Assembly: GCA_010909165.1 (NCBI GenBank)
Contig: VJWM01000134.1
Location: forward strand, 1 to 64,000
From: Anthoceros angustus
Taxonomy: Eukaryota; Plantae; Anthocerotophyta
Direction of reading: 5' to 3'
DNA: 64,000 bases
Within the stretch, counting starts at the first letter, position 1. Every line of letters begins with the position of its first letter. Made by a program: the position numbers and the translations under genes. This document shows, piece after piece, positions 3,301 to 31,564 of this stretch. The notes below the pieces were generated by a model, which was not told the DNA's origin, searched no databases, and saw only the letters and a list, made by a program, of their open reading frames with translations.

Positions 3301-3319
3301 GCACCCGTAAATACAAGTA

Positions 3320-5554: not shown

Positions 5555-5650
5555 TGGAGATCAAGACGTTGTCGATAACGAGTTTGTCGATCACGAGTTT
5601 GGAGATCACGAGTTTGGATATCACGAGTCTGGAGATCACGAGTCTGGAGT
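5555..5650. repeat. 15-bp tandem repeat (GATCACGAGTYTGGA), about 6 degenerate units
   Basis: Read directly from the sequence. Confidence 0.9.
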
Positions 5651-5949
5651 TTCACACGCGACTGTCAAGCTTCCAAGAGTTTTTTGAGATTTCATGTAGC
5701 ATACATGTGTGCTACATAACATTGTCGAACAACAAACCTTTAACACAATTGTCCAAACAACATTGTCCAAAAACACATCCCAAAGGTGGGTTGGCCCATC
5801 CACAGACAACAAGAGTGTGTTGTCACACAGTCCTGTCACCCATATGACAAAATCGCACTGTATGCAAGGACCAAAGCAAAATCATCAACAACTTGCTCCA
5901 AATAATACTGGGGCAACCAAAACACTGGATCCTTGCCTCCTTCTTTCTT

Positions 5950-8900: not shown

Positions 8901-10280
8901 GCCAAATGGTGGACAAATGGAGAAGTAGACAAGTTAGCTTGAGTCACCTGACAGCAGCATGTGCCCCGACAAGCCCAAAATCTTCAACAGACTCAGAAAC
9001 ACCAATACCAGCAAAAACCCAACAAGCATCATCGGCCGCATGCCCGACAAGCAGGCGCATATAAGCGTGATCGCGAGAAAGGCATTACGAGGACCATCAG
9101 AAATAGAGGTCCACGATGCTGTAATTCTTTGGAACCACAGCATAACATCGGAATCGGTACAAGCACACTGCAAATATGGAAGTCCTAAAATTTCGAAACA
9201 ATTGAGGCAAATGCTCGGCCGTACGAGACACAATTCAAAATCTTTGTGTTGGGCACAAAATGAAACCTGACCAAGCCCTCTGCCACAATATGCATGCTGT
9301 AGACGGATGTGCACAACATAAATGGATCAACGACAACAAACAACGATGCAAACTGGGATCTTTCTTAGTGGAAGGCAAAACCATGGCCTAAACCCTATGC
9401 GTAAATCTGGACAAATCTGTCAAGTCAACACACTCCTTCTTGTCCCTTGCATGCAGTGCCTTGCTCCTGCTCTCTACCTCTATCACCGCCTCCTGCACCC
9501 TCCTTATCAAGTAGTTTGGCAGAAGAGGCCTTCTTTACTTTACGAGAGGAGACGGTGTCCCTCTCTCCAGCCCTACTTCCACGACTACTGTGGCCGTGTC
9601 ACGAGCCACAAAACAGGCCGTGCTTCCTCCCTCTCGTCAAGCTCGGCCTCCCCACCTCCTCCTCATGTTCCTCATGCTCCTCTTCCACCTCTGGTTTTGA
9701 GCTTTCTTCTTGTGACCTTCACCTTCTCGGTCTTGGCAGGGACACTGGCCCAATTAATGACCTTATGCAACAACTTCTCCAAGAGAATACCAAGCACCAT
9801 GTGGCGGGGGACTTTTGTCCGTTGCTGCTGACCGTCGCCCTAAATCGGAAGAAGAAGCTCATCCACGTTCGCACTCCTCGGGAAGCAACCTTGTAGTAGC
9901 GTTGAACGCAGCCTTCACTAGCATGATACGGCTCCCAAACCACGTTGTGATAACTGACACCTCCAACAAGCTCCTTCAAACCCTTAAGAAGCATGTCGTC
10001 CGGACATTGATGCCTTTGTCGCGGGCTTTCCATCTCCATCATGACTCCATATCCTCACGATTCCAAGGCCTCCTCCTGACGGATAGCACAGCGGCTCGCT
10101 TAGAAGCGGTTGTGCATTCTCTTCTTATTCCGTGTAGGATTGCTGGCCATGGCACCCACACCTCCACGGCCTGGCGGGCGGCGGGCCTGGCGAGGCCACG
10201 ACAAAGAAATGTGAGGCGGGGATGGAAGGAGGAGGAAGGCAGCGGCCGAGGCGTGGGACACGAAACATAAGCGTGAGGAT
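5950..10280 (-). pseudogene. Accessory ORF2 remnants of element B (probably multi-exon)
   Basis: VLGILLEKLLHKVINW (~9750-9800) matches ALGILVEKKMHKAVNW in A. WHTLD..AARV..DPKV (~8090-8280) matches WDTLE..TARA..DKKV in A. GSLKRK..VFMV..DLAWGKENL (~6090-6330) matches GTLKRK..NFMV..DPAWGGEIL in A. Confidence 0.55.
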
Positions 10281-10616
10281 GCATGCGCGATGGCGGGCGA
10301 TGGCGCCCGATGAGGGCAGGCGTAAGGTAGGGAGGCGAGCCAAGCGGGTCGTGTGCACAAAGTCGGGTTTCCGAGTCAGCGAGTTATTCAGTTAACGAAA
10401 GTAAGAAAGATTATGTAATTTTATATTACCTTATGTAAGTAAGTTTAACCTAAAATAAATTAATAGAAGTAAATTATATGTAGGTAAACAAAGTCATTAA
10501 ATAATCACAAGTGAGATTTGAAAGTTCGAATTCTATCCTTCACACTCTCTCTCAAGGTGACCAATTGTGTTGTGACATTTGGTACTAATATGTGGCACCA
10601 AACCATGCTTCCGCCC

Positions 10617-12484
10617 AGACGACTAATCTCGCTACACTTGGACTTTTCCCTTGAGTTTGAAGAGTGAGGCGCTTGATGAGATTGCTGCTTGGATTCCCCT
10701 GGTCCAAGACCACGGCAGGCAAAGGCTGGTTAAATGTCTAAGGGTGACGTGGTGGGGAGTTCTGGCGGGAAATATGAAGTTGTTTAGGCGAGAATGGAAT
10801 GCGTTGGTAGCAGTTCCATATACTCCTCAACAAAATGGAGTTGCTGAAAGAAAGAACTAGACCTTGATGGGGATGACACAGGTTAATGTTGTCCCGGTAG
10901 GCTTATCAAGGGCCTTGAGCTCGGTAGAGTGCTATAACCATAGTAATGACTATTTATATTACGAATAGAGTCCCTACAAATTTTGCCTAATACAACACCC
11001 TTTGAAGCCTTCCGGGGTGAGTAGCCAAGTCTCCTTCATCTCCATGTCTTTGGCTCTCAAGACTCAGGTTTGTTCCCCTGTGAGCTGGCCACGGGGTTAG
11101 ATAACCGGGCTAGTCCCTATCTATTCATTGACTACTCTGAGGTGTCAAAGGCTTACCGCGCTGGAGTTCAAACAAATCCAGTGTTCATCGATAATACCCA
11201 ATTTCAGCCTTCATGATGCTCCTAGACATACAAAGAAGAAGGTGTGAAGTTCGCCATCGAATTTCTGCAGGTGGAACACCTGGGTCTGGTCATACTTGCG
11301 CTGAATAAAAAAGAGAGACTCCACTTGCCCGCCTCATCATCCTAGCAAATCAGTCCCATCACTCGGCCTCGAGAAATATGCTTGACTGAGACACTTCATA
11401 GCACACCCTCGAGGTGGCATGTACTTCCAAAGACAAGCATGTGCGCAAGGCTGGTTAAATGTCTAAGGACTGATAATGGTGGGGAGTTCCTACGGCAGAA
11501 ATATGAAGAGTTGTTTGAGCAGAATGGAATTCGTTGACAGCTGACAGTTCCATATACTCCTCAACAAAATGGAGTTGCTGAAAGAAAGAACTAGACCTTG
11601 ATGGGGATGACACGAAGCATGTTGTCCTGGGTAGGCTTATCGAAGGGCTACTGGGTAGAGGCCATAGTGACAGCTACTTATATTCTGAATAGAGTCCCTA
11701 CAGCCTCTTTGCCTAATACAACACCCTTTGAAGCCTTCTGGGGCAAGAAGCCAAGTCTCCTTCATCTCCATGTCTTTGGCTCTCCAGCATTTGTGTTTGT
11801 TCCTGTAGCCAAGCGACGTAAGTTAGATAACCGGGCTAGTCCCTATCTATTCATTGGCTACTCTGAGGTGTCAAAGGCTTACCGCGCTGGAGTTCAAACA
11901 AATCCAGGTGTTCACTGGGATAATACTCCACCCTGCAGCTTTCATGATGCTCCTAGACATACAGCAAGAAGGTGTGAAGTTCATCGAATTTCTGGTGTGG
12001 AATACCTCGCTCCGGTCATACTTATGCTGACAAAAGAGACTCCACTTGCCCGCTCATCATCCACACAATCCGGGGTCCCATCTCCTGAAACATGCTTGAA
12101 TTGAGACACTCATAGCACTGGAGGGCACAGCCCAAAGACCTCCATGCCGCTGCTCAGGCCTCCTCCATGGTTCTTTGCGGGGATGAAATCTGCCATTCCC
12201 GGTTAAGTAATTCTAGAATTTTCACAACACCTCAATGCCTACAAACGTGATATACTCGAGACCTGAGTGCGCTCCCCGGGCCGGTAGGTGGGCGGTGCCA
12301 GCTGCTCACGCTGTGAGGAGGCGACTGAAAGTGTCTCTCTCACTGCTGGGCCGAAGCCAAGTCTCCTTCATCTCCATGTCTTTGGCTCTCCAAGATTTGT
12401 GTTTGTTCCCTGTGAGCTGCTACGAAGTTAGATAACCAAGGCTAGTCCCTATTCATTCATTACTCCGAGGTGTCAAAGGCTTAC
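10617..12484 (+). mobile_element. Ty1/copia integrase fragments, about three partial tandem copies
   Basis: Motifs DD*SRYTW, VKCLRTDNGGEF, PYTPQQNGVAERKN, YILNRVPT, HLHVFGS and FIGYSEVSKAYR (ORF 11598-12104). The copies restart near 11441 and 12345. Confidence 0.85.
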
Positions 12485-13100
12485 CGTACTGGAGTTCAAA
12501 CAAATCCGTGTGTTCATGATACTCCACCCCTCGCAGGCTTTCATGATGCTCCTAGACATACAGCAAGAAGGTGTGAAGTTCATCGTAACTTGCAGGTGGA
12601 ATACCTCGTTCCGGGTCATACTTGCGCGAATAAAAGAGACTCCACTTGCCCGCGCTCTCATCATCCACAAACTGGGGTCCCATCCTGCCCTGAGAAACAT
12701 GCTTGAATTGGAGACACTCATAGCACACCCTGGAGGGCACAGCCTCCAGCACCTCCATGCCGCTTGCTCGAGGCCTCCTCCATGGTTGCTGTGCAGGATG
12801 AAATCTGCTATTCCTGGTTGCGACCCTAGAATTCACAACACCTGCCGAATGCCTACAAACGTGATATACCTCGAGACCTGTGGGTACGCCTCCAGCTGCC
12901 CTGTAGTAGGCGGTTCACTGCTCTGCATGAGGAGGCGCACTGAGTGTCCTCCCATCCGATTCAGCCGATCGCGAGCTCCCTGGGTCGAGGCCGACTTGCC
13001 CTGAGCTCCTGCTGTGCTTCCATGGTCTCTGATGGAGGATGCTTATGTGACGTCTCCCTGCGCTTGGGTGACGGGTGGCGCTTCCCCTCGATGCTTCACC
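12485..13100 (-). pseudogene. Heavily decayed gypsy-like RT/RNase H remnant fused to the copia fragment
   Basis: SGQVGLDP..AYYR and LFYSRKY..ELH resemble the gypsy RT-RNase H connection and RNase H motifs. Shorter copies start near 11160 and 11885. Confidence 0.4.
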
Positions 13101-13589: not shown

Positions 13590-14674
13590 CACACTTAGCA
13601 CGTTACAGTGCTCACATAACCATTCTCCTTTCCGAACACCATTCAAAGGTCGGTTTGAGACAAAACAGATGGTAACCATGGTCACATCTGTCACATAACA
13701 ACATGAACTCTTCGCTGCCAGTGCCCACACCCTCATGGTGGCAACTGGGTGGGATCCCGAGGTACAGTCGTGTCCAAGTTAAGCAAATGGCATGGAGCCA
13801 AGTGCTTCATGTGCTCCTTGCACCTTCTGCCATCTCTTCCTTCAAGTTCAACCACACCCTGCTCACCAACTTGCACAACTCTCAAGATAAGCCTCCCCTG
13901 TTTGACATCCGAGGCGTGTACGGGGCTGTCTTTGCAAATACACATAATCTCTAGGCGCAAACTTGCGAGCTTTGGGCTTCCACGAGCCCCCCCGCGTGTA
14001 AGCATACTTCAGCTGGTCCCGATGCTGGGCCACAGCCAAATTGTCCATAGCCATAGGAAGAATCCTTTGAAACACCTCTCTGCTGCGGCTTGAACTGTGC
14101 CACACATTTGCATCTTGCTCGGTCAATAGGGATGGAGTAAGTGTCCTTCACCACATTCGGCAACTTTGCTACGTCAAATAACAAGAAATATGGACTGAAA
14201 CTCCCAAGAGGCGCACAGCCCGGCCACAATACCCCAACACGATGTAAGGAGCAATTCATCCCAACACTTGGGCTCACGGTTGATGAAGTATTTCCTTAGT
14301 GCATCCTTGAAGGTGCTAGCCTCTGCCGAGCCATCGCCTGGGTGATCTCGATGTCCTCCTGTGATCGATGAGACTCACCAGCAAGGTGGAATTCACCTCA
14401 AACTCATTACCACGACCGCGGAGCACATCTACGCAGCTCCCCAATCACTAAGCACCGCGGAAAGGCTCGGTACGTAATGCAAAGTTCTTTGTGGCAAGAA
14501 GGCTACCTCAACCCACTTAGAGAAATGCTCAATCATGACCATGCAATGTCGGTTACCTTGCTTCGTGAGAGGAAGCTCTGGCATAAGATCAACCGACCAT
14601 CTGAAAAATAGTCCTCTGATTGGTAGGGAGTGCAACACCACATCTTGGGTGTTAAATCTGGCTTTGACTTCGTC
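13590..14674 (-). pseudogene. pol: Gypsy-1 pol 3' part: integrase core plus C-terminal PHD finger
   Basis: CDEVKARFN..LHSLPIRGLFFRWSVDL..MVMIEHFSKWVE; RDQLKYAYTRGG; then EEFMLLCDRCDHGYHLFCLKP / PLNGVRKGEWLCEHC (13605-13735, one frameshift). Confidence 0.85.
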
Positions 14675-15667
14675 ACATGGGTGTAAGCATGGTTTGGTGC
14701 TCACATTAGTGAGAAACGGACGAAACATTGTTATTTTGTCCTCATGTAACGTTAATAATTTTAACTAATTTATTTCTTCTCTAAACTGATTTTTTACAAG
14801 ATATACAAATATATCACTTCTACATGAGATTAAAATTTAAAATTAAAATACTCATGAAAATATTCAAAATGAAAGTCTAAATTTAGAGACTACTTGGGAT
14901 GGGCATTGTCTCACTCGGTGGCACTTGTCACACTATGTTTACAGTGGGCCGAACAGGCGAGCGGGCACTCGGCCCTTACCTAAATCATTTTGTAGCATAT
15001 TTACGAGATGAGCAAGCGGATCGCCGTGTAAAACAAATTTTGAGTTGCCGCGCGCACGCCACTTGATTTAGGGTTCTTTGCAGAAGAGGTCACCGCCACA
15101 CCACCCAGCTGCGAGGCGGATCTCGGCACAGGCGAGTAGGCTTATCTTGAGGTCTGGGGACAGGACTATGTAGCATGAGCTGGAACGATATGTGGAGCGC
15201 GTTACGCCTAGATCTGCGGCATGTTTGATAAACGTTTTCTTGATGAGAGCTTTGGACTTAGCTCACTGGTGGGTATATGTGGCGGGGGGAGTGGTGGGTT
15301 GAGGCGGGGACTGTTGGGTACGGTGGCAAGGGTTGGCAAGGGAGTGGTGGATTGAGGTGGGGAAGTGGTAGGCGGAGGTGGCGGTATGCATTGGGTTTAG
15401 GTAGTCCTTGGTTCATTGTATTTCTAAGCTGGTTCTTGATGGGCTTTCATGGAACTGTGAGGAAGCTGGATGTGCAGTGGTGGGCGATGTCGGTATCACC
15501 TTGTAGGATCACACGATCGCTGCAGATCTACACCTAGCCGGATCCGTGGAGGCGCGAGCTTGCGAGGTGATCGGCTTTTAGGGTTGTGCGCTTGTTCTTG
15601 GCACTGCGGTACAAAGTTGGAGTCTAATGCTAGCGTGCTTTTGTTTAGGGTTGTGCGTGTAGCAGGC

Positions 15668-18636
15668 ATGGCTCGGTCACCATCAAGCGCCAGGATGGGG
15701 CGATGGCGTCGACATGAGCGCCGAGGCCCAGGCCCAGTGGCCTGGTGAAGCATCTTCTAGTGAAATGGTGTTCAAGAGTTGCCGGAGGAGAATAACAAGG
15801 AATCTTGGTATTCCTCAGTGCAGGTCAAACGAGGGGACCCATGCGGCAAGAGAGGAAGGTGGAGCAGAAGAGGATGCAACGCTACTGGGCAAGAAACTCG
15901 TGGTGCCCAAACTCTGTCAGGTATAGTTTAGAGAGCGGCTATGGCCATTATTTACGGTGTTAAGGAATGCTCGATGTCATAAGCGGGATGTGGCTCGCAA
16001 ATTAGGTCATCGGTTTCTAGAGCTTACAAGTGGATACACGGCGAATGTCAAGACATTCGGAAGTTTAGTAACCTACCATTCTGAAGATGTTTCGACCAAG
16101 AGCTCGACAGATGCCAAAGACACCAATTGGGAGCATTGTTGTTGAAGAATGTGCGTGAGGCTTGCACAAGTTTAAAGGATGTTCAAGTTGGTGACAAATT
16201 GCGGGCAAGGAACACCTTGTTCAACATTATCTTATCGGAGGATATCCAAGGAAAGTGCAGTTTCGAGCCTTTCTCGGCACATAGGAGTGAGCGAGGCGGA
16301 TCCATCAAGCTTTGAGCACCAGCGGGGAGGATATGTTTGGGCGAGAACATGGTGTGGGGGCTGGAAGGAAAGCAAGGTCGACATCCTTCGGCCTATGTGA
16401 AAGCAAGCATCCGCTTTTGGGAATACCTTGGCCCGTCAAACACAAAGATACCAAGCGGTCGGACAGCTAAAACCTTCATCACCCACATCACGCACTTTCT
16501 TGACATGTCGCAAATGCGTTTGGGTCATGGTCTTGTGCCTTTGTGTGATGCACAAATCCATGTTATTCTGGTTGCCTTTTACATCTTTGTTTGGGCATCT
16601 CCTTGTCGAGTGTGTGTGAATGCCTAGTGTACATGTTGATTGTAACCTTAGTTGGCCATCCGCTTGGGGACATGAGAAAAATTTGGTCTTTGCGGTCAGG
16701 TTCATTTGAGGTGTAGCATTGCATGTACCAAGTCTATATGAGGCTCGTGGCTGCAAAGTGGGTTTGTAAGCTTTCGACTCATTTCACGTGTAATGCTTAG
16801 TGTAGATGTTGCTCCGAACTTCAATTAGGCATCTGCTTGGGGCCTTGTGGGCAAATTGTGGCACCGGTGTTCAAGTTCATCGAGGTGTGGCGGATCGCAT
16901 GTGGGCTGTCGTGAATTCTACTTGCGCTTTTGTGAGGAACACCCGGACATTCAAGTAGGGCGGAGCTTTGAGAAGTTGAAGCCATTTTTGTGAAGAGCTG
17001 CGGAGCGTAATCTTTGTTGCGGTATCATGTGGAGATGGCCTTTTGAAGGATGCGTTGAATGGCCTCTGGGACTCTCTCTCGTGTCCATCCCGTGGTCTTT
17101 GCCATTGTTCTTGTGAGGTGCTTTGCCGGGTACATCTCCCATTGTTTGTAATGCTCCCTCCACATGTGTGGCGTCGGTGAGGCCTTTGTCAAAGTGCTCT
17201 TTGTGCGGCGGTGCATTAGCATGCTCGCATGTGCAAGGCACTTGTGTCCTATGTGGGGTGAATAAGCTTAAGTTCGTCCTGGAGACTTATAAATGTTCAA
17301 ATGCTCTTCTAAAATGGAGATGCTTCCAATACCAAGTTGTGGGCAAGGATGTGGATGGGCGGGGATAAGAAAGCGGATCAAACTTGTCTTCATGGAGACA
17401 CATCCCAGAATTTGTTGAGTTCTTCAAGGGCAAGTTGAAGGATTTCATTCTCCATGACTTTGTTCGTGATGGCGGGGTTGGAGTTAAGCATTGCCTAGAG
17501 TGGTTTCCATCCGATGTGGTTGTCTCGGTTATGGATTTTTCTCGATTACGCATTTGGAGTCCAAGATGAAATCCGGTCCATGCATTGGCGAGAATGACCG
17601 AGTTTCCATCCTCGTTACGGTTTTCTAGCGCAATGGCCCCTAGATCGACAACCTGCGCAAACATTGAAATACTACCACTTCTACATCGGTGTGACCTTGT
17701 GCATGACACGCTCTTCGTTCAACCTTTGTTTTGATGAAAGCTGGTGGATGTTGGATTCGGGTTCCCAAGACCTCGGGAGCATTGGTCTTTGGTCGGATGG
17801 AGCAGCAAGTCAATTCAAGGCATGTCGACCTTCATACTTCATCTCCGGTACCCTAAGCGGTGGGCGCAACATCTTGTGGTCATACTTTGGGAGTGGCCAT
17901 GGCAAGGAGAGCATGATGGTGCGGTGCTATTTTGAAGAGAGCCCTTAGAGCGAGTCCTCTCCCACGGGGAGGTTGCAAAATGGTGATGTTGTCCAAGATG
18001 CAAGAACACATTTCTGCTGCGGCAAGCTCTTATGCATCCGGGCAGCATGGAGTGCATAGAAGTTTCGGCTTATTGGCAAGGATGAGGTGAATCGGAGGGT
18101 GAAATATGCTTGTGACCCCATACCGGGTCCAAGAAGATGCATAGCCTGGGGCTAGTGTGGCGGATCCGTGCAACGAAAATGCAGCCTGTCTTGTTTTTGT
18201 GCGAGTGTATGGAAAGCAACCATGATGCTTGAGAGAGTTCCTCACGCTTTTGGAATTTAGTTAAGATTAGACCACATCGATGGTCCGCTCCTCGGATTAC
18301 CCGTGACCACAGCAATTCCTTTACTTGGACGCTCTCCTTGCACGCTCCCGATGATGAAGTGTGGATCTCTCTCGGTTGGCGGACCTCTTGGAAGTCGGTG
18401 ACAACTTCATGGTTTTTGCCAATAAAGAAGATGAGGGCCAAGAATTCTACCTTGCGGTAATCGAGGTGAAGCACACGCTTAGCACAAGCCGACACGCCCG
18501 AGCCAGTCACATCAAGGTGAAGCTGTGGTGGTTGGTCGATTACATGTTGCGTAAGAATATTCACAGGTCTCTATACCTTGCCTCTAGAGAACGCGATGTG
18601 TTCAACCACCGAGTTAGTCAAACTATGCAAGTTTGA
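15668..18636 (+). pseudogene. Sola-type (Sola2-like) DDD/E transposase, frameshifted, with a probable intron at ~16513-16957
   Basis: Motifs across frames: KLKDFILHDFV; FPSDVVVSVMDF..YAF..QDEIRSMHW (~17510-17590); WSDGAASQFK (~17790); WSYFGSGHGK(G)EHDGA (~17877-17925); C-terminal LEVGDNFMV..EFYL. The subfamily assignment rests on recalled motifs. Confidence 0.75.
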
Positions 18637-19259
18637 CATGGTCCACCATGAAAACAGGATGGTGACGAGTTGTTATCGTCCTATCATCGGATGCTCGCAA
18701 GTAGTGGACTCCCTTGTGGAGGAGAGTAATCGTGATGATCTTGTTAGGGATCCTTAGGTTGTTTTGATGTGGAGTGGTAAGTAAAAGTTGTTTTGGTGTG
18801 GAGTGTAATCTTCGTTGAATGACGGGGAGATTGTTGGCATGTCATTCCCTTATCGTTGTTTCCTTGATCCATGAAGATAGCTTGTTTGTATCCAATGATG
18901 ATCCAATAATGCATGGTGCGATGTACAAATTGGAATGCCGTTGATGTGGGCACGGTCATTTTCCAATCGAGCGAGATATTGACAGCTTTATAGAGCGGTA
19001 CGTAAGTTGTGTCCTTGAACCATGTAGATAATTTCCAACAATGAAATGCATCTGGCAGTATGTGCCTGGTTTTTGCCTGGCTCTTCCTGTAGGTGCCTGC
19101 CATTTGGCACACAGGGAGTCACAGTGAATTCATCTTGAATTCAACTTCCTTGACCATACACGTGTGGTGGGGATGGAGGCATGTCAGGCTGCAAGGGTTG
19201 AACAAGAAGCAGTCTGCAGACAAGTATGGACGTGGCTTTATATAGTGCTGGTATGTTCC

Positions 19260-19540
19260 CTTCAAGTTGGTTACATGTGCACTTGTACAGTTGTTCACTT
19301 TTCTTGCCATGTGATCCTCGCATGTTCCCGTGGTTACATGGGCACTTGTGCATGGCTCACTCTTCTTGCCTTGTGGTCCTGGCATGTTCCCGCGGTTACA
19401 TGGGCACTTGTGCATGGCTCACTCTTCTTGCCTTGTGGTCCCGGCATGTTCCCATGGTTACATGGGCACTTGTGTGGCTCACTCTTGTTTCCTTGTGGTC
19501 CGGCATGTTCCCATGGTTACATGGGCACTTGTCTGATGGT
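19260..19540. repeat. 62-bp tandem repeat, about 4 units, with degenerate extensions
   Basis: Unit CATGTTCCCGTGGTTACATGGGCACTTGTGCATGGCTCACTCTTCTTGCCTTGTGGTCCTGG starts at 19321 and 19383 and recurs near 19445 and 19504. Confidence 0.9.
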
Positions 19541-20888
19541 TCACTCACATGTGGTCGTGATATGCTCCCTGGCTATACTGGCACTGCTCTGATGGTGTGG
19601 CATGGTGTACTTCTCTTGCTATGTGGTACGTGGCATGGTGTACTTGTCTTGCCATGTGGTTACGGTCCCGTGGTTACATGGGCACTTATTTGTATGTACT
19701 TGTCTTGCCGTACATGGCTTGCCATGTGTATTGGTTACATGGCTACTTCAACACTTGTTCATCATGTGTTTTGTGCGGTTGGGCACTTCACCCTGCAGTG
19801 TGTGGTAGCTTTCGTGTTTAGGGCTTTGCTTAAAGTCCATGCTTTGGCGTCCGGTGACTATACCTTTTGTTTTTGTAGGGGCGGTCACGCGGTACATGAC
19901 AGGCGGCTCATCCCGGTCACGGCGGAGCTCATCCCGTCACGGCCCGGCAGGCGGCTTAGAAGCCACATTGGGCGCCTCCACATTCGACGCGGCTCTGTTC
20001 GGCTCGGAACCCATCCTCTCTGGGCGGTCCTGGTTCTTCGTGGTTTGGGAGTGCTTCACCTCCGTTAACTCTGAGACCACTTCTCACACAATCCCTTCAT
20101 CGTCAAGGGATTGAGGACATGATGCTTTCCGCTTTTCACTATCTTTGTTTGAATTGGAAGGGATATGGTGGGGATCATCGAGGTTTCAACAGATGTAGGT
20201 GTGGTGATTCCACTCCCTGTTGGGATGTCTCGAGTATATCCTTTGGACTGACACACCCCGTCCATATTGGGAGTTGGGCTTTCTTGTTGATCGGGTAATG
20301 AAGAAGCGTTATCCTTTCTTGAGGCGGTGGCGGTTATGCAGGATCCGGTTGGAAGGATGCGGTGGAAGTGGGTGCCTCAGTCACCGCTCCATCGCAATGA
20401 GGAAATTTCAGTTCGAGCACGAGATCCAATGCATCGAGGTCGGACGAGTTCAAGGGACAAGGAGTTTGAGGCAAGAATTCGCCATTGGTGCGGCTTTTGC
20501 ATTTACCGAGCATCGACATTGTTGTCGATGACCCGGAGGCACAGGTGACATGGTCCGAGTCCCTCACGAGTAAGAGATTGGTTGTCCACATGCTAAGGGC
20601 ATTGTGGGTATGACTAATCGGTTTGAGAAATTGAAGCAGAGGCCCAGTGGTGGCAAAGTTTACCACAAGATGTGGTTCCAGTGCAAGTGATTTCGTTGAA
20701 GACAACTTTTCTTTGGCTGGGAAGTTGGATTGAGAGGTGGCCAGTAGGCTTAATGTCTAGATGTGAGCATCGTGCACCACGCCTGATGGTTGGCATGTGA
20801 AGCAATTCTAGGTAGGGGGCTAGAATGCCGTTTCTAGGCTTCCGACATTTTCGTATAACGTCTTGTGTACGGTTTCGTCTGACAACAA

Positions 20889-20958
20889 GGTTGTAGGTTG
20901 AAGGTTGTAGGTTGTAGGTTGTAGGTTGTAGGTTGTAGGTTGTAGGTTGTAGGTTGAA
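20889..20958. repeat. (GGTTGTA)10 heptamer repeat
   Basis: Ten 7-bp units, two of them GGTTGAA. Confidence 0.95.
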
Positions 20959-21381
20959 GTCTGAAAAAACTTTCAGGCTTCCAAACAGCAGGAGCTTGTT
21001 TACTTCTGTTGAAAGCTCCATACGCTGAAGTCTGTTTCTAGGTTTTGCATATGTGAATGTGCTCAGAGGTGAAGGCATGTGTGTGAAAGCTTCCCAGAGT
21101 AGTGGATGTGAAGCCGCTTGAGGGTTCGCTGGTTCTAGCCTCACAGACAAACCAGACTTCGGGCATCACAGACACATCAGACACACAGACAAAGCAGACT
21201 TCGAGCATCACAATCAAAGCAGACTTCGGGCAATAGAAATCTTATTAGATACATGTCCAGAGTTTTTCTCACCTTTCTGACATCATGCCCATTCAGAGGC
21301 AAACTTTACAATGCCCAAGGCCTCACTCACAAATTCAAAATCCATCCCAGATTGGCCATCTAGGCTTGCTTCCTCACGAGC

Positions 21382-21888
21382 ATGCATGATTCAATGAGAA
21401 GTAATCATCTCACCCCTTTCAATGGTGGCCTTATGCTGCATGTACGCCCGGGCAACTTAAAGCCCGCGGTCTACCCCGGTTCCACTTTCGAGCACGAGCA
21501 CCCTCACTCTGAGGTCCCGCCTTTGCACTCAATGGAAGCTATGGCGCCCTTGACAGGAATGGATGATATTGTTGTGATGGAGGGGACGTGGAATCTCCAA
21601 GCCGGAGCACGGAAACTGGCCAAGGGCGCCCTCTTTGCGCCGGAGGTGAGTATCAGCCATCTAGCTATGACAGATTCATAGCTTTTCAACTTGGCTGCGC
21701 AGTACTTGCATCGAATGGAACGGGCCAAGGCACGGCAGCCCTACCGGAAGAAGGTGCGAGCTCAGTGGTTGGCCCCCTATGCCAGGCCTTCCGCTGCCGC
21801 AGACTGTGGTGCTGATGGACCTGGAGGACAAGGTGCTCTCCCTGTGGATGACTCAAGCGAGCACGACACCGGCGTTGTGGTAGACTGA
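21382..21888 (+). pseudogene. Accessory ORF3 of element A (unknown function, one in-frame stop)
   Basis: ORFs 21382-21681 and 21691-21888 are in the same frame. They are homologous at protein level to 4700-5149. Confidence 0.6.
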
Positions 21889-22110
21889 GGGCGCCTCGAG
21901 CGGAGCAACGGTTTCCTTGTCATCGTGCTTGCATATAGCATGTATGGCTGGAGGCATGTCTGGCAAGAGGGATGTGTGGCACACCTGCTCTGCTCATGGG
22001 TGTGCTATGCTTGGCGAGGCGATGTATTCGTGTGGTCAAGGCTGCCTGTGAATCTTTGCTTGTTGCTTCCTGCTCAATTGTGGAATGATTTGTACATTAT
22101 ACTTTCTAGC

Positions 22111-23040
22111 AGAGGCATGAGTGTCGCATTGTGAAATCGATGCTATGGCACTATACCACAATTCAATAAAATGATGTCTTGTTCTCTCGGCTAAAACGAG
22201 GCTTGCCATTTCCAAAACTCTTCACAAATGGCCTTGGTATGCTTTTCATGCCAGACGCTTAGAGACAGTGCTGCTTTTAGGCTGCGTGGCCTTGTAGCTA
22301 GCCATTCTTTTGAGGCAATGTAGCTCGTGTAGCTATGCGAGTGCATCGATTAACACCCGTGTAGGGTGTTAATCGACAAATCAAATGCACATCTAGACAA
22401 GCAAGGCAAGTGTGAAGGGTCACAACGCACAACATTCCAATTGCCAATCGAACTCGAACTCACACACACAACATAGTTTGAATCCATGTCACAACATCCG
22501 AGCCGAGCTGGCATGTTTAACATGGTTCACCACCAAACTAAAACCATATCTCGCAGAGAGGCATGAGTGTCAGGCATTGTGGAATCGATGCTATGGCACT
22601 ATACCACAATTCCGTCAATAAAATGATGTCTTCTGTTCTCTCGGCTAAAACGAGGCTTGCCATTTCCAAAACTCTTCACAAATGGCCTTAACTGTTGTGC
22701 TTTTCATGCTTCGGACAGCACCGTCTTAGGAGACAGGTGCAGCCTGTTTTTTTAGGCTGCGTGGCCTTGTGTAGCTAGCCATTCTTTTGAGGCAATGTAG
22801 CTCGTGTAGCTATGCGAAGTGCACACTGATTAACACCCGTGTAGGGTGTTAATCAGACAAATCCAAATGCACATCTAGACAAGCAAGGCAAGTGTGAAGG
22901 GTCACAACTGCACAACATTCCAATTGCCAACACACCGAACTCACACACACAACATAGTTTGAATCCATGTCACAACATCCGTGAGCTCGGCATGTTTAAC
23001 ATGGTTCACCACCAAACTAAAACCATATCTCGCAGAGGCA
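22111..23040. repeat. Tandem duplication of about 450-480 bp
   Basis: AGAGGCATGAGTGTC..GCTATGGCACTATACC starts at 22111 and 22557. The copies differ mainly by small indels. Confidence 0.9.
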
Positions 23041-23318
23041 TCCACAGCTAAATTGCCCAGACACTTCCACACCAGTTGGGACTCCACACTCTCGACAAGT
23101 CGTGGATAGCTGCTGTCCCTCTCCTAGTTCGCCATGCCTTGATCCAACCATGCTCTATATCCAGTGACCGACAATTGTGGAGTCTTCTTGTTCTTCTCGT
23201 TGGCCTTGAATAGCTACCATTGGAAACTTTGTGGTCGACACGATTATCCTTCAAGCATTATTGGGTCACCACGTGGCCTCAATCTAGCAGCTCAAAGGCA
23301 CTTTTGTCGGGCACTTGC

Positions 23319-24011
23319 TCATAGTAATAACCTTTCACCACTTTTCACCCGTAAAATCTCACCACCCCAAGCGGGGTCTTCCGTCTGCTCAGCTAATGTC
23401 GTGAGTGCCTCTGTGCATTTCAGTGCATACCACTTGACCTTCTCCTTATTATCCTTCATTGCACGCACCATGAAATTGTCTCCTGGATGCAGTGACGCTG
23501 CACCAAATTCCAGACCTGGTGGTGCTTCCACCAAGGCACCTTGTGCTGCTTTCTTGGGACGCCCTGGTCTCCCGGTCTTGGAGGCACTCTTTCGTTTCAA
23601 TGTGCCTGGAGTCTGATCCGGCTTGCCTCTTGGTTTGCGCAGAGACTGACGTCGTCCACCAGAAGCTTCGACCACATCAGGAGCAGATGTTTCAAGTTGT
23701 GGTGCTTTCCGTCTACCAGTAATAGCTTTCGGCGAATTCAATTCCTTAACCTGCTCTGTGGGCACTTCCTTACCCAGTGCAGTAGCCATTTCGTCGGTGG
23801 CCTCGCTCATAGTGGTCAGTGCAAAAGTGGGCACTGCGTCACCAACACAAGTTGCCACGTCAACGGTGGCCTGACCCATAGTGGCCACTACACCACCACT
23901 GCAAGTGGCCACTACATCACCAACACAAGTGGCCACTGCATCACTTGCACAAGTGGTCACTTCCTTACCACTCGGTGGGGCCACTTCCTCATCGTCCTTG
24001 GTGGTGGCCAC
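23319..24011 (-). CDS. ORF2 C-terminal part of element A: VAT-rich repeats, basic AT-hook-like GRPGRPKK, GDNF-motif domain
   Basis: 230-aa ORF containing LKRKSASKTGRPGRPKK and PGDNFMVRAMKDNKEKVKWYALKC..DPAWGGEIL. Homologous remnant in B at ~6090-6330. Confidence 0.55.
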   Translation of the reverse strand: MATTKDDEEVAPPSGKEVTTCASDAVATCVGDVVATCSGGVVATMGQATVDVATCVGDAVPTFALTTMSEATDEMATALGKEVPTEQVKELNSPKAITGRRKAPQLETSAPDVVEASGGRRQSLRKPRGKPDQTPGTLKRKSASKTGRPGRPKKAAQGALVEAPPGLEFGAASLHPGDNFMVRAMKDNKEKVKWYALKCTEALTTLAEQTEDPAWGGEILRVKSGERLLL

Positions 24012-24699
24012 CTCCTTCTGCTACCGATCCCTCTCTAAGAGCATTTCCACATCTTTGGGCAATTCATCCTCTGGCACTTGACTTCATCTTTGGGCACTTC
24101 ATCCTCGGTTCATCTTCATCCATCACAGCCTTCCACATTCTTCCCTTCTGTCTCCATTGAGGTGGACAAAGACGGCAAAAAATCTGGCGAGTATCACACT
24201 GTCTGGGTTTCGATCGACAACCAAAGTTTCATCCTCTTGCACAACCCGAGTCTCCGTAAAAGAATTTGGGTATCCTCCTCCGCCTGATTGTCCACTCCAC
24301 GAGATGCATCTTTGCCAGTGGACATCAGACCACACATGTGTGCCCACCATGTCTTGCCTGGTGAGGCATTATTGGCACACAAGCAGACTGACCCGTCTCA
24401 CTCACTGGAACTTGAACATTGGGGCCAACAAACAAAGAGGTTGCCACGTTCGAGGCACCCCCATTCATCGAAGGGGCCAACCCCAAACATGACACTGCTG
24501 GGCTGCCCGGAGAGTGGGAAAAATATCGCATCACACTACACCCTGTGGTGCGTGCCTCACTCGGACTCAAACCCTAGGTTTGAGTCCGAGGCACCACCAC
24601 CTCCGGCGTATCCTGGACATAGTTGTGCATCGCCAACAAGGACGTCTTGGATTAGCACCGTATGGGTGGCTGCTGCCCACGAGGTGGTGTGATGAACGC

Positions 24700-25800
24700 C
24701 TGAGCACCTCCAAGCGGGGGCAGTGATTTCTATGTGCCTATGACCAAACAAAATCCAAGTTAGCACAAATGTCTTGTGAAAGTTGTCCCAAATCATGAAG
24801 CCAACTTACACAATTACTAACCAGAGACTCCCAAAACTTCCGAGGCAACAGGGCACTATCTTGTGCACACTCAGCAATTCTTCCAAGCGGTGCTCCATAA
24901 TGTGGAAGTCTCGCAGCAACCATGGTAATGCTCGTCCACTCTCTCTCCGATCACGTTCCCATGCGTGCGGGGCGGTACTTGTGAATGGCCAACCCTTAGC
25001 CTTGAGCCACTTTGCGGGGGCGAAGACAACAAGGTGATTGGGGCAAGTCACCGTGACCAACATGTGTTGGTAGAGGCATGCATCATGAAACAAGTGCCTG
25101 TGGGAGGAAAACGAACTCATAGCATCCGAACCCCAAATCACCATGGAACCAATAGTCGTTAGAGGCATGGACAGCAAATTGAAACAAGAGCCAAGGGATG
25201 CAAACAGGAGGACAACTGGTGCACACGCAGACTTTGTGATATGAAGGGCACATTTTGGCTGGTGTAACAAGGAGCTGGAATCCACTGAGGAGTCCTTTTT
25301 CCCTTCAGCGTCAAACTATGTATGCGGCCGAAGGCATCATGTAAGTCCTCCGCCAAATTAACCGTTCGTTGAAGGGTGTCACGCTCCTTGTTGTTCGCTG
25401 TGAGATTGTCCGCTGCCTCCTGTACAGCACGATGTTGCCTCTGAGCACGGGCAACATGTGCATCCTCTTCTTGCAGAGAATACTCCAGCATTTGTTCAGT
25501 TTGAAAAGAATATAAAGTTGAAGTCTGCTGGAAAGATCCATACCTTCTTGTCATAGATTATTGCGCCAAGAGCGCGTGCCGTGGTGAGCTCACCAAGAGC
25601 AATTTTTGCTGCCACTAGATTGCTTGTCTCCTCGCTTGCAATCTGTGACAAGCGGTTCTCTTCCTTCGACAAGGAGATAAGCTCCTCAACCAGCTGAGTC
25701 TTTATGTGCTTGTGCAGCTCGAGAGTATCCCAGCCTGTGCACAAGAGGGTGGGATGCACATTGTAAAACAAGAGAGATGAACTTCCAAAATGGTGCCACC
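24700..25800 (-). pseudogene. ORF2 middle part of element A: predicted coiled coil plus Cys/His-rich segment
   Basis: WDTLELHKHIKTQLVEELISLSKEENRL; HVARAQRQHRAVQEAADNL; HRHLFHDACLYQHMLVTVTCP. Partly conserved in B (7600-8500). Confidence 0.45.
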
Positions 25801-25804
25801 GTGA

Positions 25805-26130
25805 GGAATGATGGAATGCCCAATCGCCGACATGAGGGAATGACAAAATGCCCAATCGCCGACATGAGGAATGATGGAATGTACGCAACATGAGGGAATG
25901 ACGAAATGCCCAACTGATGGAATGACGAAATGCCCAATCGCCGACATGATGGAATGAATGAAATGCCCAACCGACATGATGGAATGATCTTAATGCCCAA
26001 CATGATCGAATGACGAAATGCCCCGACATGATGGAATGACGAAATGCCCAAGCCCGACATTAGGAATGACGAAATGCCCAATCGCCGGACATTAGAATGA
26101 CGAAATGCCAATGAATGACAAAATGCCCAA
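25805..26130. repeat. About 30-bp tandem repeat (GGAATGACGAAATGCCCAATCGCCGACATGA)
   Basis: About ten degenerate head-to-tail units, with no unique spacers. Confidence 0.9.
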
Positions 26131-26759
26131 TTGCCCGGTGGCGATGAACTAGGCACCCCATGCCAAGATGCCCACGAGAAGGCATGACTGAGCAGTGCAG
26201 ACGAATGAATGACCAAACAACACCGGATGTCAATATGCCCAGTTGCACCCTTGCCAATGTGCACGGATGTGCCCAAGTGCCCCCATGAAGTATCCCTCCC
26301 AGAGCCTAAAGCGAGGTTTGAACTGAATCAACAGTTGGGAAAACAAATGCAGAGCAAAGAATTAGCATGCTACCAACTTGGAAACACCCACACCATGCGG
26401 TGATGAACTTACAAAACCGAGCTTGCCAAGGCGATACTTTTGTACAATCGAATCAACATAAGGTCGCGAAATAAAAACACAGATCCCATCGTGTACACAA
26501 TTGTGCAAGGCAAACTCATAATCGCGATGGATGCGAAAACCATGGAAACCCTTTGAAATGTGTGGTAGGGCTCAAGCGGGGGCACTGCAGCATGTAGCAG
26601 ACATGTAGACAAAGCATCTAACACGGCATCACACCCACCACCATCCGCTCAAGGCTGTGCATTCACATGTTCTGGTCTAACACAGAAGGATGTGGGTGTC
26701 AAGGATCCAGCACACAAGGCTAATCATGTCAAGGATCACAAGGCCGTGTGTCAAGAATG

Positions 26760-26870
26760 CAAGGCCGGGGCTGTGGATCTGGAAGGCCGGGGCTGAAGGC
26801 CGGGGCTGTGGATCTGGAAGGCCGGGGCTGAAGGCCGGGGCTGAAGGCTGGGGAAGGCGTGATTCAAGGC
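26760..26870. repeat. Short tandem repeat (AAGGCCGGGGCTG with TGGATCTGG inserts)
   Basis: Read directly from the sequence. Confidence 0.85.
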
Positions 26871-27484
26871 CGGTATTCACGTGTTCAAACGTGAGTAGAA
26901 GCAGATGTCCTGTCAAGGTTCAAAGCACACCACACAAAACAATCTGCTGGATCAAGCTCCAACACACACACATAAAAATATTCGAGCTGTGAGCGGCTAT
27001 CCGGGCCAACCATCTAACCTAAACCACCTACCCATTCACAGCTTGCACATGCACTGATCACACGACCAGAATAAGCTCATGAAACGCACTACAACCATAA
27101 GCTAATGAAGCGCATGATTTTCGAACTGTGAGCAGATCTGGACAAAGAGACGACCGTCATCACGCATCACACCCACCACTCATCGCTAAGATCGCTCAAG
27201 GCATGCGATGTCATTAGATGCATCTGTCTGTCAAGGTTGAAAGCACACTTCAAACACAAAACAATCTGCTGGATCAAGCTCCAACACACACACAAAAACA
27301 TTCGAGCTGTCGGCATATCCGGACCAGTCCGCAATCACCGCTCACGGATCAAGCTCAAGCATATCACCAAAAAAAACTTGAGACAATCAACTAGGAGAAC
27401 GAGAAAATGACCCACGATTGTGCCCCTCCTCTTCTCCATCCTCTGCTGAAAGAACACGATGATTTTTGTCCTCCTCTACCAAGC

Positions 27485-28235
27485 CTATGACTTCCTCCTT
27501 CGAATAAGTTCTTCCTCACGCTCCTTGGCAGGCATGTCCTCCTGCTCTTGCTCCCTACCGGCGTCACCCTGTCTCACCTCCTCATGGCTGTCCTCAGAAT
27601 CTGAAGACACATGCTCAATCCCAGCACTGTTACCTTTCCCCCTGCTCTGTGACCTTGTTACGGGGCCTTGTGAATCAGGGGTCTCTTCCTGCCGGACATC
27701 CACTTTCTTCTCCTTCTCCCCTGCCCGACCCTTCTTCTTCTCCTCCTTCAAGGCTTTCCTCCCATCTGTTTCTTGTTTGAAGGCTAACCAGTTTACAGCC
27801 TTGTGCATTTTTTTCTCCACTAGGATGCCCAAGGCCATCAACCTCGGATTTTTGGCCACCACTACTAGCTCGCTTACCATAAATATGGAAGATCGTGTCA
27901 TCAATGTTCCGCCACTCCTTATCTGAAAACTTTTCAGATCCTTTCCACCGTAAGCCTCACCGGCGTTCTGTTACACCAAACGGAGGTCAAACACGTCGCC
28001 TCCCACCGCCTCCTTATGTTGAAGCATCACGAACGTTCACTCCTTCCTCTCGCAGGACAAAGTCTCCAGTGTGCCAACACCAAGTGGAGCGCTTCCACTT
28101 GGGTGCGTCCTCCAAGGCTTTCGTCACACGGGCTTGTCGAGTCACAGCATTCTTTAGAGCACGCTTCCGATTCCGTGTCATTCCTACAATCTCCTCATCA
28201 GACGCCACCATGTCACTATAAATAGATGCAGGCAT
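27485..28235 (-). pseudogene. ORF2 N-terminal part of element A (charged, unknown function)
   Basis: ORFs 28014-28235 and 27485-27904. MVASDEEIVG..; LMALGILVEKKMHKAVNW is conserved in B. Confidence 0.55.
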
Positions 28236-28599
28236 CCTAGCACCTTGTCCTCAATGTTGACCCAAATGGCCCGCAGCAGCAGTAGCGGCGGTAGATGAGC
28301 CTGCTGCTGATTCAAGCTAGCACATCTACAACAAAAAGCTTTAGCAACATGTTAATAAAAGCACAAACCAGCAGAGGGCAAGAGCAACAGCAGTCGTTGA
28401 GAGGCGGGCAACCGAGGGAGTGGAGCAAGCACCAACACTAGCAGAGTGCGAGCGGACCAAAACTTGCAAAGGCGGGCACGCACCGGCTAGCGAGCACCAA
28501 GGCTGTGAGGGGCGATGAGCAGGGGCAGCGGCTGGGGAGGCGGGAGCGGCGGCACAAGCAGAGCGGCTGGCGGGCAGCAGACAAGCAAGGGTAGGAGCA

Positions 28600-29110
28600 C
28601 CAGACCACCAGCTCCCAAGTTTCCCACGCCTCGGCCTTGAGCTCCCAAGCTCCCTTGAAGCCTCCCACGCTCTCGCCAGGCTCCCAAGCTCCCTTGAAGC
28701 TTCCCACGCTCTCGACTCCCAAGCTTCCCACACTCGCGACCTTGACTGCTTCCCACGCCTCGGCTCCCAAGCTTCCCACGCTCTCGGCTCCCAAGCTTCC
28801 CATGCTCTCGGCTCCCAAGCTTCCACGCTCTCGGCTCCCAAGCTCTGGCCAAGGCGTCCTTCTCGCAAGGAATAAATTTTGGTAGGAGAAACATAGGCGG
28901 GAGCACCAGTGAGGTAGACCAAAGCACAGGCGGGACCAGCGAGAGGAACCAGCACCAGGGCGGGACCAGCAGAGGGTCGAACCCGCCCGGGCGAGACCAG
29001 CAGCAGAGGGCCTCCAGCAGAGAGCCTCGAGAAGCAGAGGGCCTCGAGCATCAGCAGAGCGGACCAGCAGCGGCGCAAAGGGCCTCGAGCGGCAGAGGGC
29101 CTCGAGCATC
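28600..29110. repeat. Right subterminal repeats of element A (24-bp CTCGGCTCCCAAGCTTCCCACGCT array and GGGCCTCGAGC motifs)
   Basis: The 24-bp period is visible at 28759 and 28783 onward. Confidence 0.85.
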
Positions 29111-29430
29111 AGAGGCGGGCAGCCCGGCAGCGCCAAAGTTCGCGTAGGCACATGTAAGAAGATGGGCGGGAGCAAGCGGAGGGCGTTCGTCAAGGTAAGG
29201 TGTCGTTGACCTTCAAACATGTAAAAAGTAGACAAGGTAAACGTAAGATAAAAATAATCAACTACAATGATATAAAACTATAAGTATAAGTAGAATAAAA
29301 ATATTAATTTAGTGAAACTTTGACTATCTCACATCACTCTCTCACATCTCTCTCATCTCTCAAAAGTAACCAAGTGTACCACAACCATATGGTACAAAAG
29401 TGTACCACCAAACCATGCTTACACCCACAT

Positions 29431-31564
29431 ATAGCACACTTAGCCACCACCTTCTCAACATCCGTGATACATCCGACTGTAAATACGTATTCTTGACATG
29501 GTGTGTCCTCTTCACACCAAAGTGGCCAAGGGTTTCGTGCACCTTGGTCACTATCCCAACCCTTTCCTCAGGGCTTGGAACTTTCTTCACGAGCTCTCCC
29601 TCTGATAGCAGCAACTCACCATTTCTCCATGAGTATCTGGCCACACGCCTCCTGAGCTTAGCCAAGCTTCCCACGCCTCGACTCCCAAGCCCCTTGAAGC
29701 CTCCCACCGCCTCCTTCAAGAAATTGAGGGCTTGAGGATGTCTCCACACATCCCTGACAGACTCTGTCAGCACATGTCCTTCTTCATGCTCATCTGTCCC
29801 GGCCATGAGTGCCATGAAGCTGCTGGGTGCACCATCTATGTGCCCCTCATCCTGTCGAGCTCCTGTGACATCCTTGTCACTCTCCAGTGGATTTCTGCTT
29901 AGCCCATCTGTATTGTGATGCACCTTGCCTGCCCTGTGCACGACCTCCATATCGTACTCAGATAGCAGCAGCGCCCACCTGGCTAGCTTACCACTCAATT
30001 TCATATTGGTCATCAGCCAATGTAATGGCTGGTGATCTGTGACCAATTGAAAATGCATTCCATATAGATAAACCTTGAAATGCAGAACTGCCCATACTGC
30101 AGCAAGACACTCTCCCTTATATGAGGAGTAGTTCACTTCAGCAGAGTTGTTAGACCGGTTTGCATAAGCCATAACTCGTTCAACACCATCTGTACCATGC
30201 TGTGACAACACCGTTCCAATTCCCGCAGTGCTCCAGCCTGTGTACAATGTGAAAGGAAGATCAAAGTCCGGCCTAGCCAACATAGGCTTCTCTGCCAACT
30301 GATCCCGTAGATCCTGCCAAGCCAACTCCTGGTCTTGGTCCCATTTCCACGCAACGTCCTTCTTCAACAACTCATACAGAGGTTTACAGGTGGAACTGAG
30401 GTCCTTCATAAACCTCCTGTAATAGTTCACCAACCCTAGGAATGCTCTGAGAGCAGCTACATCCTTTGGCCTAAGCATCTGCATCACCACCTGCACCTTA
30501 GCCAACTGTGGCATAATGCCTCCTGGCACTATCTCATGCCCCAGATACTCGATCTGCTGGAAAGCAAACTTGTATTTCTTAGGATGAGCTTTCAAACCTG
30601 AGCTAGACAACCTCTGTAGCAATATCTCCAGATGATCCATATGCTCTTCGATTGTCTCACTGAAAACCAGGATGTCATCTATGTAACAACGCACAAATGG
30701 CAGCCCCTGCAGCTCCAGATCCGCAATTCTCTGAAAATATATGGAAGCATTCTTCAACCCAAACGGCATCGTCTCCCACTCCCAAAGCTGGTCCTTCCCC
30801 CAGAAGGCTGTCTTGCACTTATCCTGCTCTTCAATCACAATTTGGTTGAAGCTTGAGCGAAAATCCAAGCTGGTAAAGAATTTTGCCTTACCTATGGCAT
30901 CGAAAATCTCGTCTGGAGTAGGCATGGGGTACCGCTCCATGGGAGTCACCTCGTTTAGAGGTCGGTAGTCACCACACATCCTCCTGTCCTTCCACTCACC
31001 GTTTTCATCCTTTTTGAGCGGCAGGACCGTCGCAGCAGCATACTGAGAGCTTGACTTTCTTATCAACCCTGCTTCGAACAGATCTTGACAGCGTTAGTCA
31101 ACAATCTCCCACTCTGCTTGACTCAAGCGATGCCTTCTTCTGAAGATGGGCTCCTCATGAGTAGTCACCACTTTGAACTTGATCTTCTCATACCTGCCCA
31201 GCTCCTTCCAACTGAATGCAAAAGCACCCCTGTTCTTCTTGAGCATGTCGATGATCTTCTGTTTATCTTCCGGGCTTACATCTTCTACGATGTGCCACAC
31301 ATGAACCTCTTTCGTCACACTCTTGGTAGACAGTTCAGTGTCCACAGCAGCCATGTTGAATCTCTCCCGTGGCAGTTCATCTTCCTCTGCCTCCGAAACC
31401 TCTTCATCCTCTAGCAATTGCAGGCGAGGGTTTCGTTTCCCTTCAGCTTCTGCAAGCTGGAACGCCAAGCCTGTGCTCACTAGCCATCTCAGACTGTACA
31501 GGTCAAATGCTTGCCCAAGCATCCTTGTGGCGCGACTTTCGCTGATGGCCAGCCGGGCGCGCAC
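29431..31564 (-). CDS. pol: Gypsy-1 pol 5' part: RT, RNase H and integrase HHCC zinc finger
   Basis: RRMCGDYRPLN, YPMPTPDEIFD, MPFGLKNA, YIDDIL, IEYLGH, FLGLVNYYRRF, NYSSYKGECLAAVWAV, TDHQPL, GKLARW, ETLGHFGVKRT..DVEKVVAKCAIC. One stop near 31094 and a frameshift near 29480. Confidence 0.93.

Follow-up and report, generated by a model that had tools for sequence, protein, structure and literature searches.

A cleanly bounded 14.7-kb DNA transposon, probably of the Sola2 group, in a Ty3/gypsy integrase gene of Anthoceros angustus

In the first 64,000 nucleotides of contig VJWM01000134.1 of Anthoceros angustus (assembly GCA_010909165.1, forward strand; this whole stretch is hereafter called the window), a retrotransposon gene is interrupted by 14.7 kb of other DNA, which raises the question of what kind of element was inserted and how it came there. 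The original prediction, made from the letters of the sequence, was of an unusually large Sola2-like DNA transposon with exact ends. The observation of a bounded 14.7-kb cut-and-paste element in a gypsy gene was confirmed, and the insert is very probably one copy of a giant family within the Sola2 group of DNA transposons.

The insert measures 14,748 bp (14679-29426). At the left junction, gtcACAT is followed by the terminal inverted repeat (TIR) GGGTGTAAGCATGGTTTGGTG from 14679, and the other end of the insert is its exact reverse complement (21/21). The termini read GGGTG...CACCC, the right end running as ...CACCAAACCATGCTTACACCC up to 29426 and then into ACATatag. ACAT thus stands directly outside both ends as a target site duplication (TSD) of 4 bp, and both the perfect 21-bp TIRs with GGG..CCC termini and the TSD had been predicted correctly. 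The 21-mer TIR has three occurrences in the window, for 0.00 expected (100 shuffles). Between 14000 and 30200, a repeat finder returned the TIR pair as the sole long inverted pair, with a length of 22 nt and 100% complementarity, the T preceding the left end pairing with the A after the right end.

An open reading frame (ORF) of 568 amino acids (29360-31066, minus strand) enters the element from the right. It contains RVT_1, RT_RNaseH and the start of Integrase_H2C2 (Pfam), and the host is therefore the pol gene of a Ty3/gypsy retrotransposon. When the flanks were joined with a single ACAT, the minus strand read ...EYVFTVGCITDVEKVVAKCAICDEVKARFNTQDVVLHSLPIRG...HFSKWVEVAFLPQRT... with no stop, and the fuller reading, ...EYVFTVGCITDVEKVVAKCAICDEVKARFNTQDVVLHSLPIRGLFFRWSVDL...MIEHFSKWVEVAFLPQRT..., was stop-free as well. 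With the insert removed, the CxxC half of the integrase zinc finger is whole again; the insertion point is located between base 1 and base 2 of the codon for the second Cys of this pair. The predicted in-frame empty site was therefore found to hold locally, but the 568-aa pol ORF is in another frame. Because the end of this ORF, HETLGHFGVKRTHH, and the CxxC half are in different frames, the host gypsy must carry a frameshift of its own, about 45-70 nt away on the right side of the insert. This host frameshift is situated at about 29470-29500, between the two halves of the zinc finger, of which HH shares the frame of the 568-aa ORF and CC does not.

Inside the element, a decayed transposase gene spans 16913-18633 on the plus strand. 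The part encoding the N-terminal Cys/His region and the catalytic core (16913-18215) contains at least four frame changes and at least five in-frame stops. Three of these stops are in the first frame (16913-17542, EFYLRF...VVVSVMDFS) and one is in the second, which starts at 17544 and carries QDEIRSMHW (17562-17588), SDGAASQFK (17793-17819) and GSGHGK (17889-17906). GEHDG (17906-17920) is found in a third frame, GAILKRAL in a further one, and the C-terminal GDNFMV domain in yet another. QDEIRSMHW and SDGAASQFK are as originally described, whereas GHGKGEHDG, which had been taken as one motif, spans a frameshift and is not a single open reading. All three Asp codons are present in the remnant, in different frames: D1 in VMDFS (17528-17542), D2 in SDGAASQFK and D3 in GEHDG. 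The pieces were searched separately, and Pfam gave no match with them. At least nine lesions were counted in 1.7 kb, and the remnant shares about 27-33% identity with relatives whose identity to one another is about 50%. As read from these lesions, the predicted gene is a long-dead pseudogene.

To find relatives of the transposase, a 116-aa piece of the remnant was used as query. A word-based protein search gave no candidate, and an exhaustive search gave 16 weak matches, 14 of which were credible fragments; the matches to P0001 and P0004, which are bacterial surface proteins, were discarded as spurious. The 14 fragments have in common the blocks DFAENY / QNE.QSMHW / HFY.SDD..HD / WSDGCASQFK / GSGHGKG.HDG, and the E-values of the 116-aa piece with fragments carrying DFAENY / SDGCASQFK / GSGHGKG.HDG were 2e-8 to 1e-4. 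With P0012 as query, 65 proteins were recovered, none with a Pfam domain, from species including Klebsormidium nitens, Cryptomeria japonica, Taxus chinensis and Adiantum nelumboides. Members of this family, which is unnamed in databases, are P0018, P0020, P0036 (Klebsormidium nitens), P0038 (Cryptomeria japonica) and P0052 (Taxus chinensis). The intact homologues, searched back on the window by tblastn, map the transposase gene with E-values down to 1e-18. Pfam gave nothing with 25 intact homologues at E up to 5; DUF7869, suggested by an Atlas feature search, was rejected for want of a match in the same 25 proteins. These protein matches indicate that the remnant belongs to a streptophyte family with members in Klebsormidium, a fern and conifers.

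The structure of P0020 was modelled with AlphaFold2 using 25 family members (mean pLDDT 80). Foldseek matches of the model were weak, and all were to RNase H-like nucleases. Using VIA-align, residues 59-273 were superposed on retroviral integrase cores, Mos1/SETMAR and IstA, with Z of 8-9.7 and rmsd of 3-4.5 A over 135-167 residues. In the model, D92 ends beta-1, D175 follows beta-4 and D216 opens a helix; D216 is conserved in 25/25 sequences, D175 in 22/25, and D92 in 14 of the 15 sequences covering that site. The Sola superfamily is defined by a DDD catalytic triad on an RNase H-like fold (PMC10741241), and the intact relative P0020 is predicted to have the same arrangement, an RNase H-like core with three conserved aspartates. 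The C-terminal domain folded alone reached a pLDDT of 42.

A labelled reference was provided by the curated Ectocarpus transposable element library (PMC12477816, supplement files 2 and 3). Its Sola2-1_Ec32 element is 4606 bp long, with a 4-bp TSD, GGCGG-CCGCC termini and a 26-bp TIR, and its best blastp match is Sola2-1_HM of Hydra in Repbase (PMC12477816). The streptophyte catalytic blocks, VVDFAENY / ISDDxxHD / WSDGAASQFKAKRPFYF / SGHGKGEHDGAGAV, align block by block with the Sola2-1_Ec32 transposase fragment, which contains VIEVDFIEKF, FASEDPRHD, HIFTDGCAKQYKGKRNFRF and TSHFKGSHDGIGAVAKGA in the same order (PMC12477816). In longer excerpts, LVIEVDFIEKF, FASEDPRHDFDFHLH, HIFTDGCAKQYKGKRNFRFL and HHFAVTSHFKGSHDGIGAVAKGAMKRE of Sola2-1_Ec32 (PMC12477816) correspond to IVSVVDFAENY, FISDDKKHDTLFVQH, WVWSDGAASQFKAKRPFYFV and WNFFESGHGKGEHDGAGAVIKRALTHE of P0020. 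Compared by eye, these are identical at 5/11, 7/15, 9/18 and 13/27 positions, with the order maintained and the three aspartates aligned; this amounts to 27/56 over the three catalytic blocks, the SxDxxHD block accounting for the 7/15. The N-terminal Cys/His stretches of P0020 and Sola2-1_Ec32 correspond too. Since the catalytic blocks match Sola2-1_Ec32 and differ from those of Sola1-1_Ec32, the family is judged to be of the Sola2 type, and it is very likely, on these blocks, that the transposase groups with curated Sola2 rather than with Sola1 or Sola3.

The ends of the element agree with this assignment. Sola elements are reported to have 4-bp TSDs and TIRs of 11-1124 bp, to exceed 15 kb in some cases, and to occur in Physcomitrella (PMC10741241). 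The perfect TIRs of 21 nt are inside that range, and the ACAT on both sides, together with the restored frame, fits the 4-bp TSD, in a single insertion for which a 2-bp duplication is formally an option. The Sola2-like identity originally proposed is accordingly supported by the blocks of the streptophyte homologues and by features shared with Sola2-1_Ec32: the block order around three aspartates, the 4-bp TSD, a short TIR (26 bp, and 21-22 bp here) and termini which all start with GG, as seen in GGGTG...CACCC here, CGCCC at the end of a second copy in the window and GGCGG...CCGCC in Sola2-1_Ec32. GRG termini were given for Sola2 in the original prediction; the one curated Sola2 element consulted starts with GGCGG. 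The two elements differ in length (4.6 kb vs 14.7 kb here) and in the exact termini (GGCGG vs GGGTG here), and the transposase of the present copy, as opposed to that of Sola2-1_Ec32, is a pseudogene.

Three other explanations were weighed. In the one that survives best, the repeat is 22 nt long, with TGGG...CCCA as the real termini, and only 2 bp (CA) are duplicated, so that the 4-bp hallmark of Sola is lost. The repeat finder indeed carries the arms to 14678 and 29427, and an A follows CCC in the second copy too. A complementary pair beside the ends is nevertheless expected by chance once per four insertions, the transposase appears to be of the Sola2 type, and curated relatives give 4-bp duplications. 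We know of no eukaryotic superfamily in which a transposase of such a type goes with a 2-bp non-TA duplication. A duplication of 2 bp is therefore very unlikely, and one of 4 bp is favoured by the Sola2-type transposase and the 4-bp TSD of Sola2-1_Ec32.

Another explanation is that the transposase comes from a separate element nested in an unrelated TIR element, whose outer ends would then be uninformative on Sola. The interior is large, repeat-rich and mostly unidentifiable, and its GC skew changes sign near 22 kb, which speaks for nesting. However, no internal TIR pair brackets the transposase, the other inverted pairs being of only 19-28 nt and 75-89%. The second, strongly diverged copy of the family (copy 2) also argues against nesting. 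It extends beyond the left edge of the window and lacks most of the catalytic region, while its right TIR (10596-10616, minus strand) is conserved at 19/21 bases and followed by AGAC. Sensitive blastn between the two copies returned four collinear blocks (Table 1), of which the transposase N-terminus was seen by tblastn too. The right subterminal regions of both copies contain GTACCA/TTGGTNAC motifs and a GA-rich run, and AT-rich counterparts of the left subterminal block were found at 29260-29320 and, in copy 2, at 10400-10530. Because copy 2 shares the TIR, the subterminal region, the upstream block and the transposase N-terminus in order, despite a DNA identity of 62-70%, the transposase is not a foreign nested element; the putative transposase and the GGG...CCC ends are shown by copy 2 to belong together. 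The 4-bp TSD and the short GG... TIRs match a curated Sola2 as well. Nesting is less probable still than a 2-bp duplication. A scan of metagenomes for the TIR gave four matches with no similarity past the pattern, about the number expected by chance for 19 fixed bases.

Least probable of all is a Sola1-like member of the transposons carrying ParB-methyltransferase genes, for although giant size is typical of Sola1-1_Ec32 (21.5 kb with a ParB-methyltransferase cargo; PMC12477816; Iyer et al. 2011 as cited there), the blocks here resemble those of Sola2-1_Ec32 and not its MDGANQSNF / VDNTVAENKNN / GHTHIQIDQ, no ParB, methyltransferase, reverse transcriptase or other Pfam family was matched by the 114 open stretches of at least 62 aa translated from both strands of the element, and no convincing methyltransferase motif context, (D/N/S)PP(Y/F/W/H), was found in it. 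The present element resembles Sola1-1_Ec32 in its giant size, its TIRs, its 4-bp TSD and the presence of another reading frame in the reverse direction; Sola1-1_Ec32 has 282-bp TIRs, AACCG termini and a transposase of another group. The piggyBac, Kolobok and Ginger groups, which also make 4-bp duplications, were rejected: the target is ACAT and not TTAA, no DDE_Tnp_1_7, THAP/Kolobok or rve-type match was obtained, and none of their Pfam families was found in the element or in the 25 intact homologues at E up to 5.

Several points weigh against the assignment to Sola2 and the history proposed below. The 22-nt repeat with CA and the 21-nt TIR with ACAT yield the same empty site, and a single complete insertion could be examined, the left end of copy 2 being outside the window. 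The match to labelled Sola2 was made by eye from the supplement, with neither an E-value nor a tree, and with no Sola3 reference. In other genomes, no relative was found that had both clean ends and a TSD. Finally, the case for mobilisation in trans is built on an approximate comparison of degrees of decay, and no copy was found intact.

The following scheme would account for the locus. A Sola2 transposase, with its RNase H-like core and three catalytic aspartates, would bind the short GGG...CCC inverted ends, excise the element and paste it at a new site, duplicating 4 bp of target. The present copy would have inserted into a Ty3/gypsy integrase gene when its own transposase gene was already dead, moved by a transposase encoded elsewhere in the genome. 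Besides the lesions of the transposase, two were counted in about 2.3 kb of the host gypsy, namely the frameshift and the stop past SDWGAA near 14429. Since its own transposase is dead whereas its ends and target duplication are perfect, the copy was most likely mobilised in trans.

The streptophyte Sola2-type transposases are direct homologues of the remnant, with the same catalytic blocks and C-terminal domain, but they are open reading frames whereas the present copy is dead. The plant family has an added C-terminal beta-rich 'GDNF' domain; the Ectocarpus Sola2-1_Ec32 fragment stops just past the catalytic core. TIRs with a 4-bp TSD were sought around the homologues in three contigs; nothing was found in L001 and L002, and L003 had long TIRs but no clean TSD. 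In L003 (Klebsormidium nitens DF237998.1), P0036 and a neighbouring gene are enclosed by inverted repeats of about 480 bp (2094-2572 / 12153-12601), 70% identical, which delimit an element of about 10.5 kb devoid of a clean target duplication, in contrast to the perfect 21-nt TIRs described here. In L001, an ENA contig, the palindrome TGGTAGCTACCA occurs at least eight times between 8363 and 9367, within the 1 kb that precedes the intact P0018 ORF. These palindromes may be binding sites of the transposase.

With respect to size and host, the initial description as 'unusually large' is fair for Sola2, given the 4.6 kb of Sola2-1_Ec32, although Sola elements of more than 15 kb have been recorded. 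In a curated bivalve library including 14 Sola2 families, the longest groups were Sola1 (mean 5.4 kb) and Academ. The statement that Sola is sparsely described in plants is partly outdated. A 2015 survey had Sola2 as animal-only (PMC4438587), but according to a 2026 preprint (bioRxiv 10.64898/2026.07.23.736688) Sola2 ranks first in abundance among the class II superfamilies of Cupressus sempervirens. The present insertion extends Sola2 to a new host and to an extreme of size, and is not a new kind of element. It provides a cleanly bounded Sola2 insertion, with its empty site, in the genome of a non-seed streptophyte; in plants, Sola2 has so far been known mainly from automated repeat tables. 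It also suggests that a length of about 15 kb is attainable for Sola2 elements with TIRs of 21 nt. The exact ends allow the family, its non-autonomous relatives and their target duplications to be catalogued in the genome. The understanding of how such elements work is unchanged by this finding.

Table 1. Features of the insertion, of copy 2 and of the interrupted host gene. Positions are those of the window; identities are at the DNA level.
Feature	Position	Strand	Counterpart in copy 2 (identity)	Basis
Copy 2, strongly diverged, same family and orientation	1-10616	+		TIR search, tblastn, blastn
Host gypsy integrase continuation, CDEVKARFN ... HFSKWVEVAF ... SDWGAA, then stop	14429-14674	-		Translation
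Left TSD copy ACAT	14675-14678			Identical to 29427-29430
Left TIR GGGTGTAAGCATGGTTTGGTG	14679-14699	+		21/21 complementary to right end; 0 chance matches in shuffles
AT-rich left subterminal block	14735-14860			Sequence reading
Block upstream of recognisable transposase, best conserved with copy 2	16111-16522	+	16-439 (70%)	blastn
Putative Sola2 transposase pseudogene, N-terminal Cys/His region and catalytic core	16913-18215	+		Translation; tblastn with homologues
Transposase N-terminus	16940-17282		3302-3663 (62%)	blastn
Transposase C-terminal beta-rich 'GDNFMV...FYL' domain, further frame	18358-18633	+		tblastn to P0020 residues 361-400; alignment
Tandem array, 62-bp unit, 4.3 copies	19268-19532			Repeat search
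Interior block	21683-21776		5006-5094 (68%)	blastn
Internal duplication, period ~450-480 bp, several segments 97-100% identical	22126-23037			Repeat families D14, D17-D20
233-codon open frame	23322-24020	-		tblastn (E down to 5e-7), translation
Tandem arrays, 24-32-bp units	25805-26109			Repeat search
161-codon open frame	27488-27970	-		Match to copy 2, E 6e-7
Tandem array, 24-32-bp units	28642-28844			Repeat search
Right subterminal region	29237-29405		Right end (64%)	Identity to copy 2 right end
Right subterminal region with TIR	29237-29426		10439-10616 (64%)	blastn
Right TIR	29406-29426	-		Inverted-repeat search and shuffles
Right TSD copy ACAT	29427-29430			Identical to 14675-14678
Host Ty3/gypsy pol: RT, RNase H, first half of integrase zinc finger	29431-31066	-		Pfam, frames; upstream of insertion

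The rest of the interior contains two open frames on the opposite strand. In the 233-codon frame, an AT-hook-like GRPGRPKK (23550-23573) is accompanied by another copy of the C-terminal domain of the transposase (GDNFMV at 23466-23483 ... YALKC ... AWGGE at 23358-23372), which is better preserved than the one at 18358-18633. The frame could have arisen by an inverted partial duplication, or it could belong to a second gene. The 161-codon frame has no Pfam or Atlas match and belongs to no known family; a block of 35 residues, the sole one shared, is 46% identical to copy 2 (9714-9818), and offers little support for a conserved second gene. One could imagine that a giant streptophyte Sola2 lineage carries a second, convergent gene, with an AT-hook and the C-terminal beta-rich domain, as a targeting or regulatory partner, and that a TIR conserved at 19/21 between copies of 62-70% identity reflects cross-mobilisation of dead giant subfamilies by a few live transposases; we regard this proposal as speculative and rather unlikely. 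The internal duplication at 22126-23037 either arose much later than the remainder of the element or is an effect of the assembly. Rfam and tRNA scans of positions 1-32000 were empty.

No date could be set on the host gypsy from long terminal repeats, as a search for flanking direct repeats found none. Its pol is about 50% identical to its best matches, which are from liverworts (Calypogeia, Marchantia), Klebsormidium and Closterium. A copia-type fragment with an SH3_retrovirus domain (E 3e-18; 11598-12104, plus strand) is present in the interval between copy 2 and the host gypsy. Two relatives of the host pol, P0102 (Marchantia polymorpha Mp_2g26090) and P0118, combine RT/RNase H with PF00145, a C-5 cytosine DNA methyltransferase domain, according to precomputed Pfam annotation.

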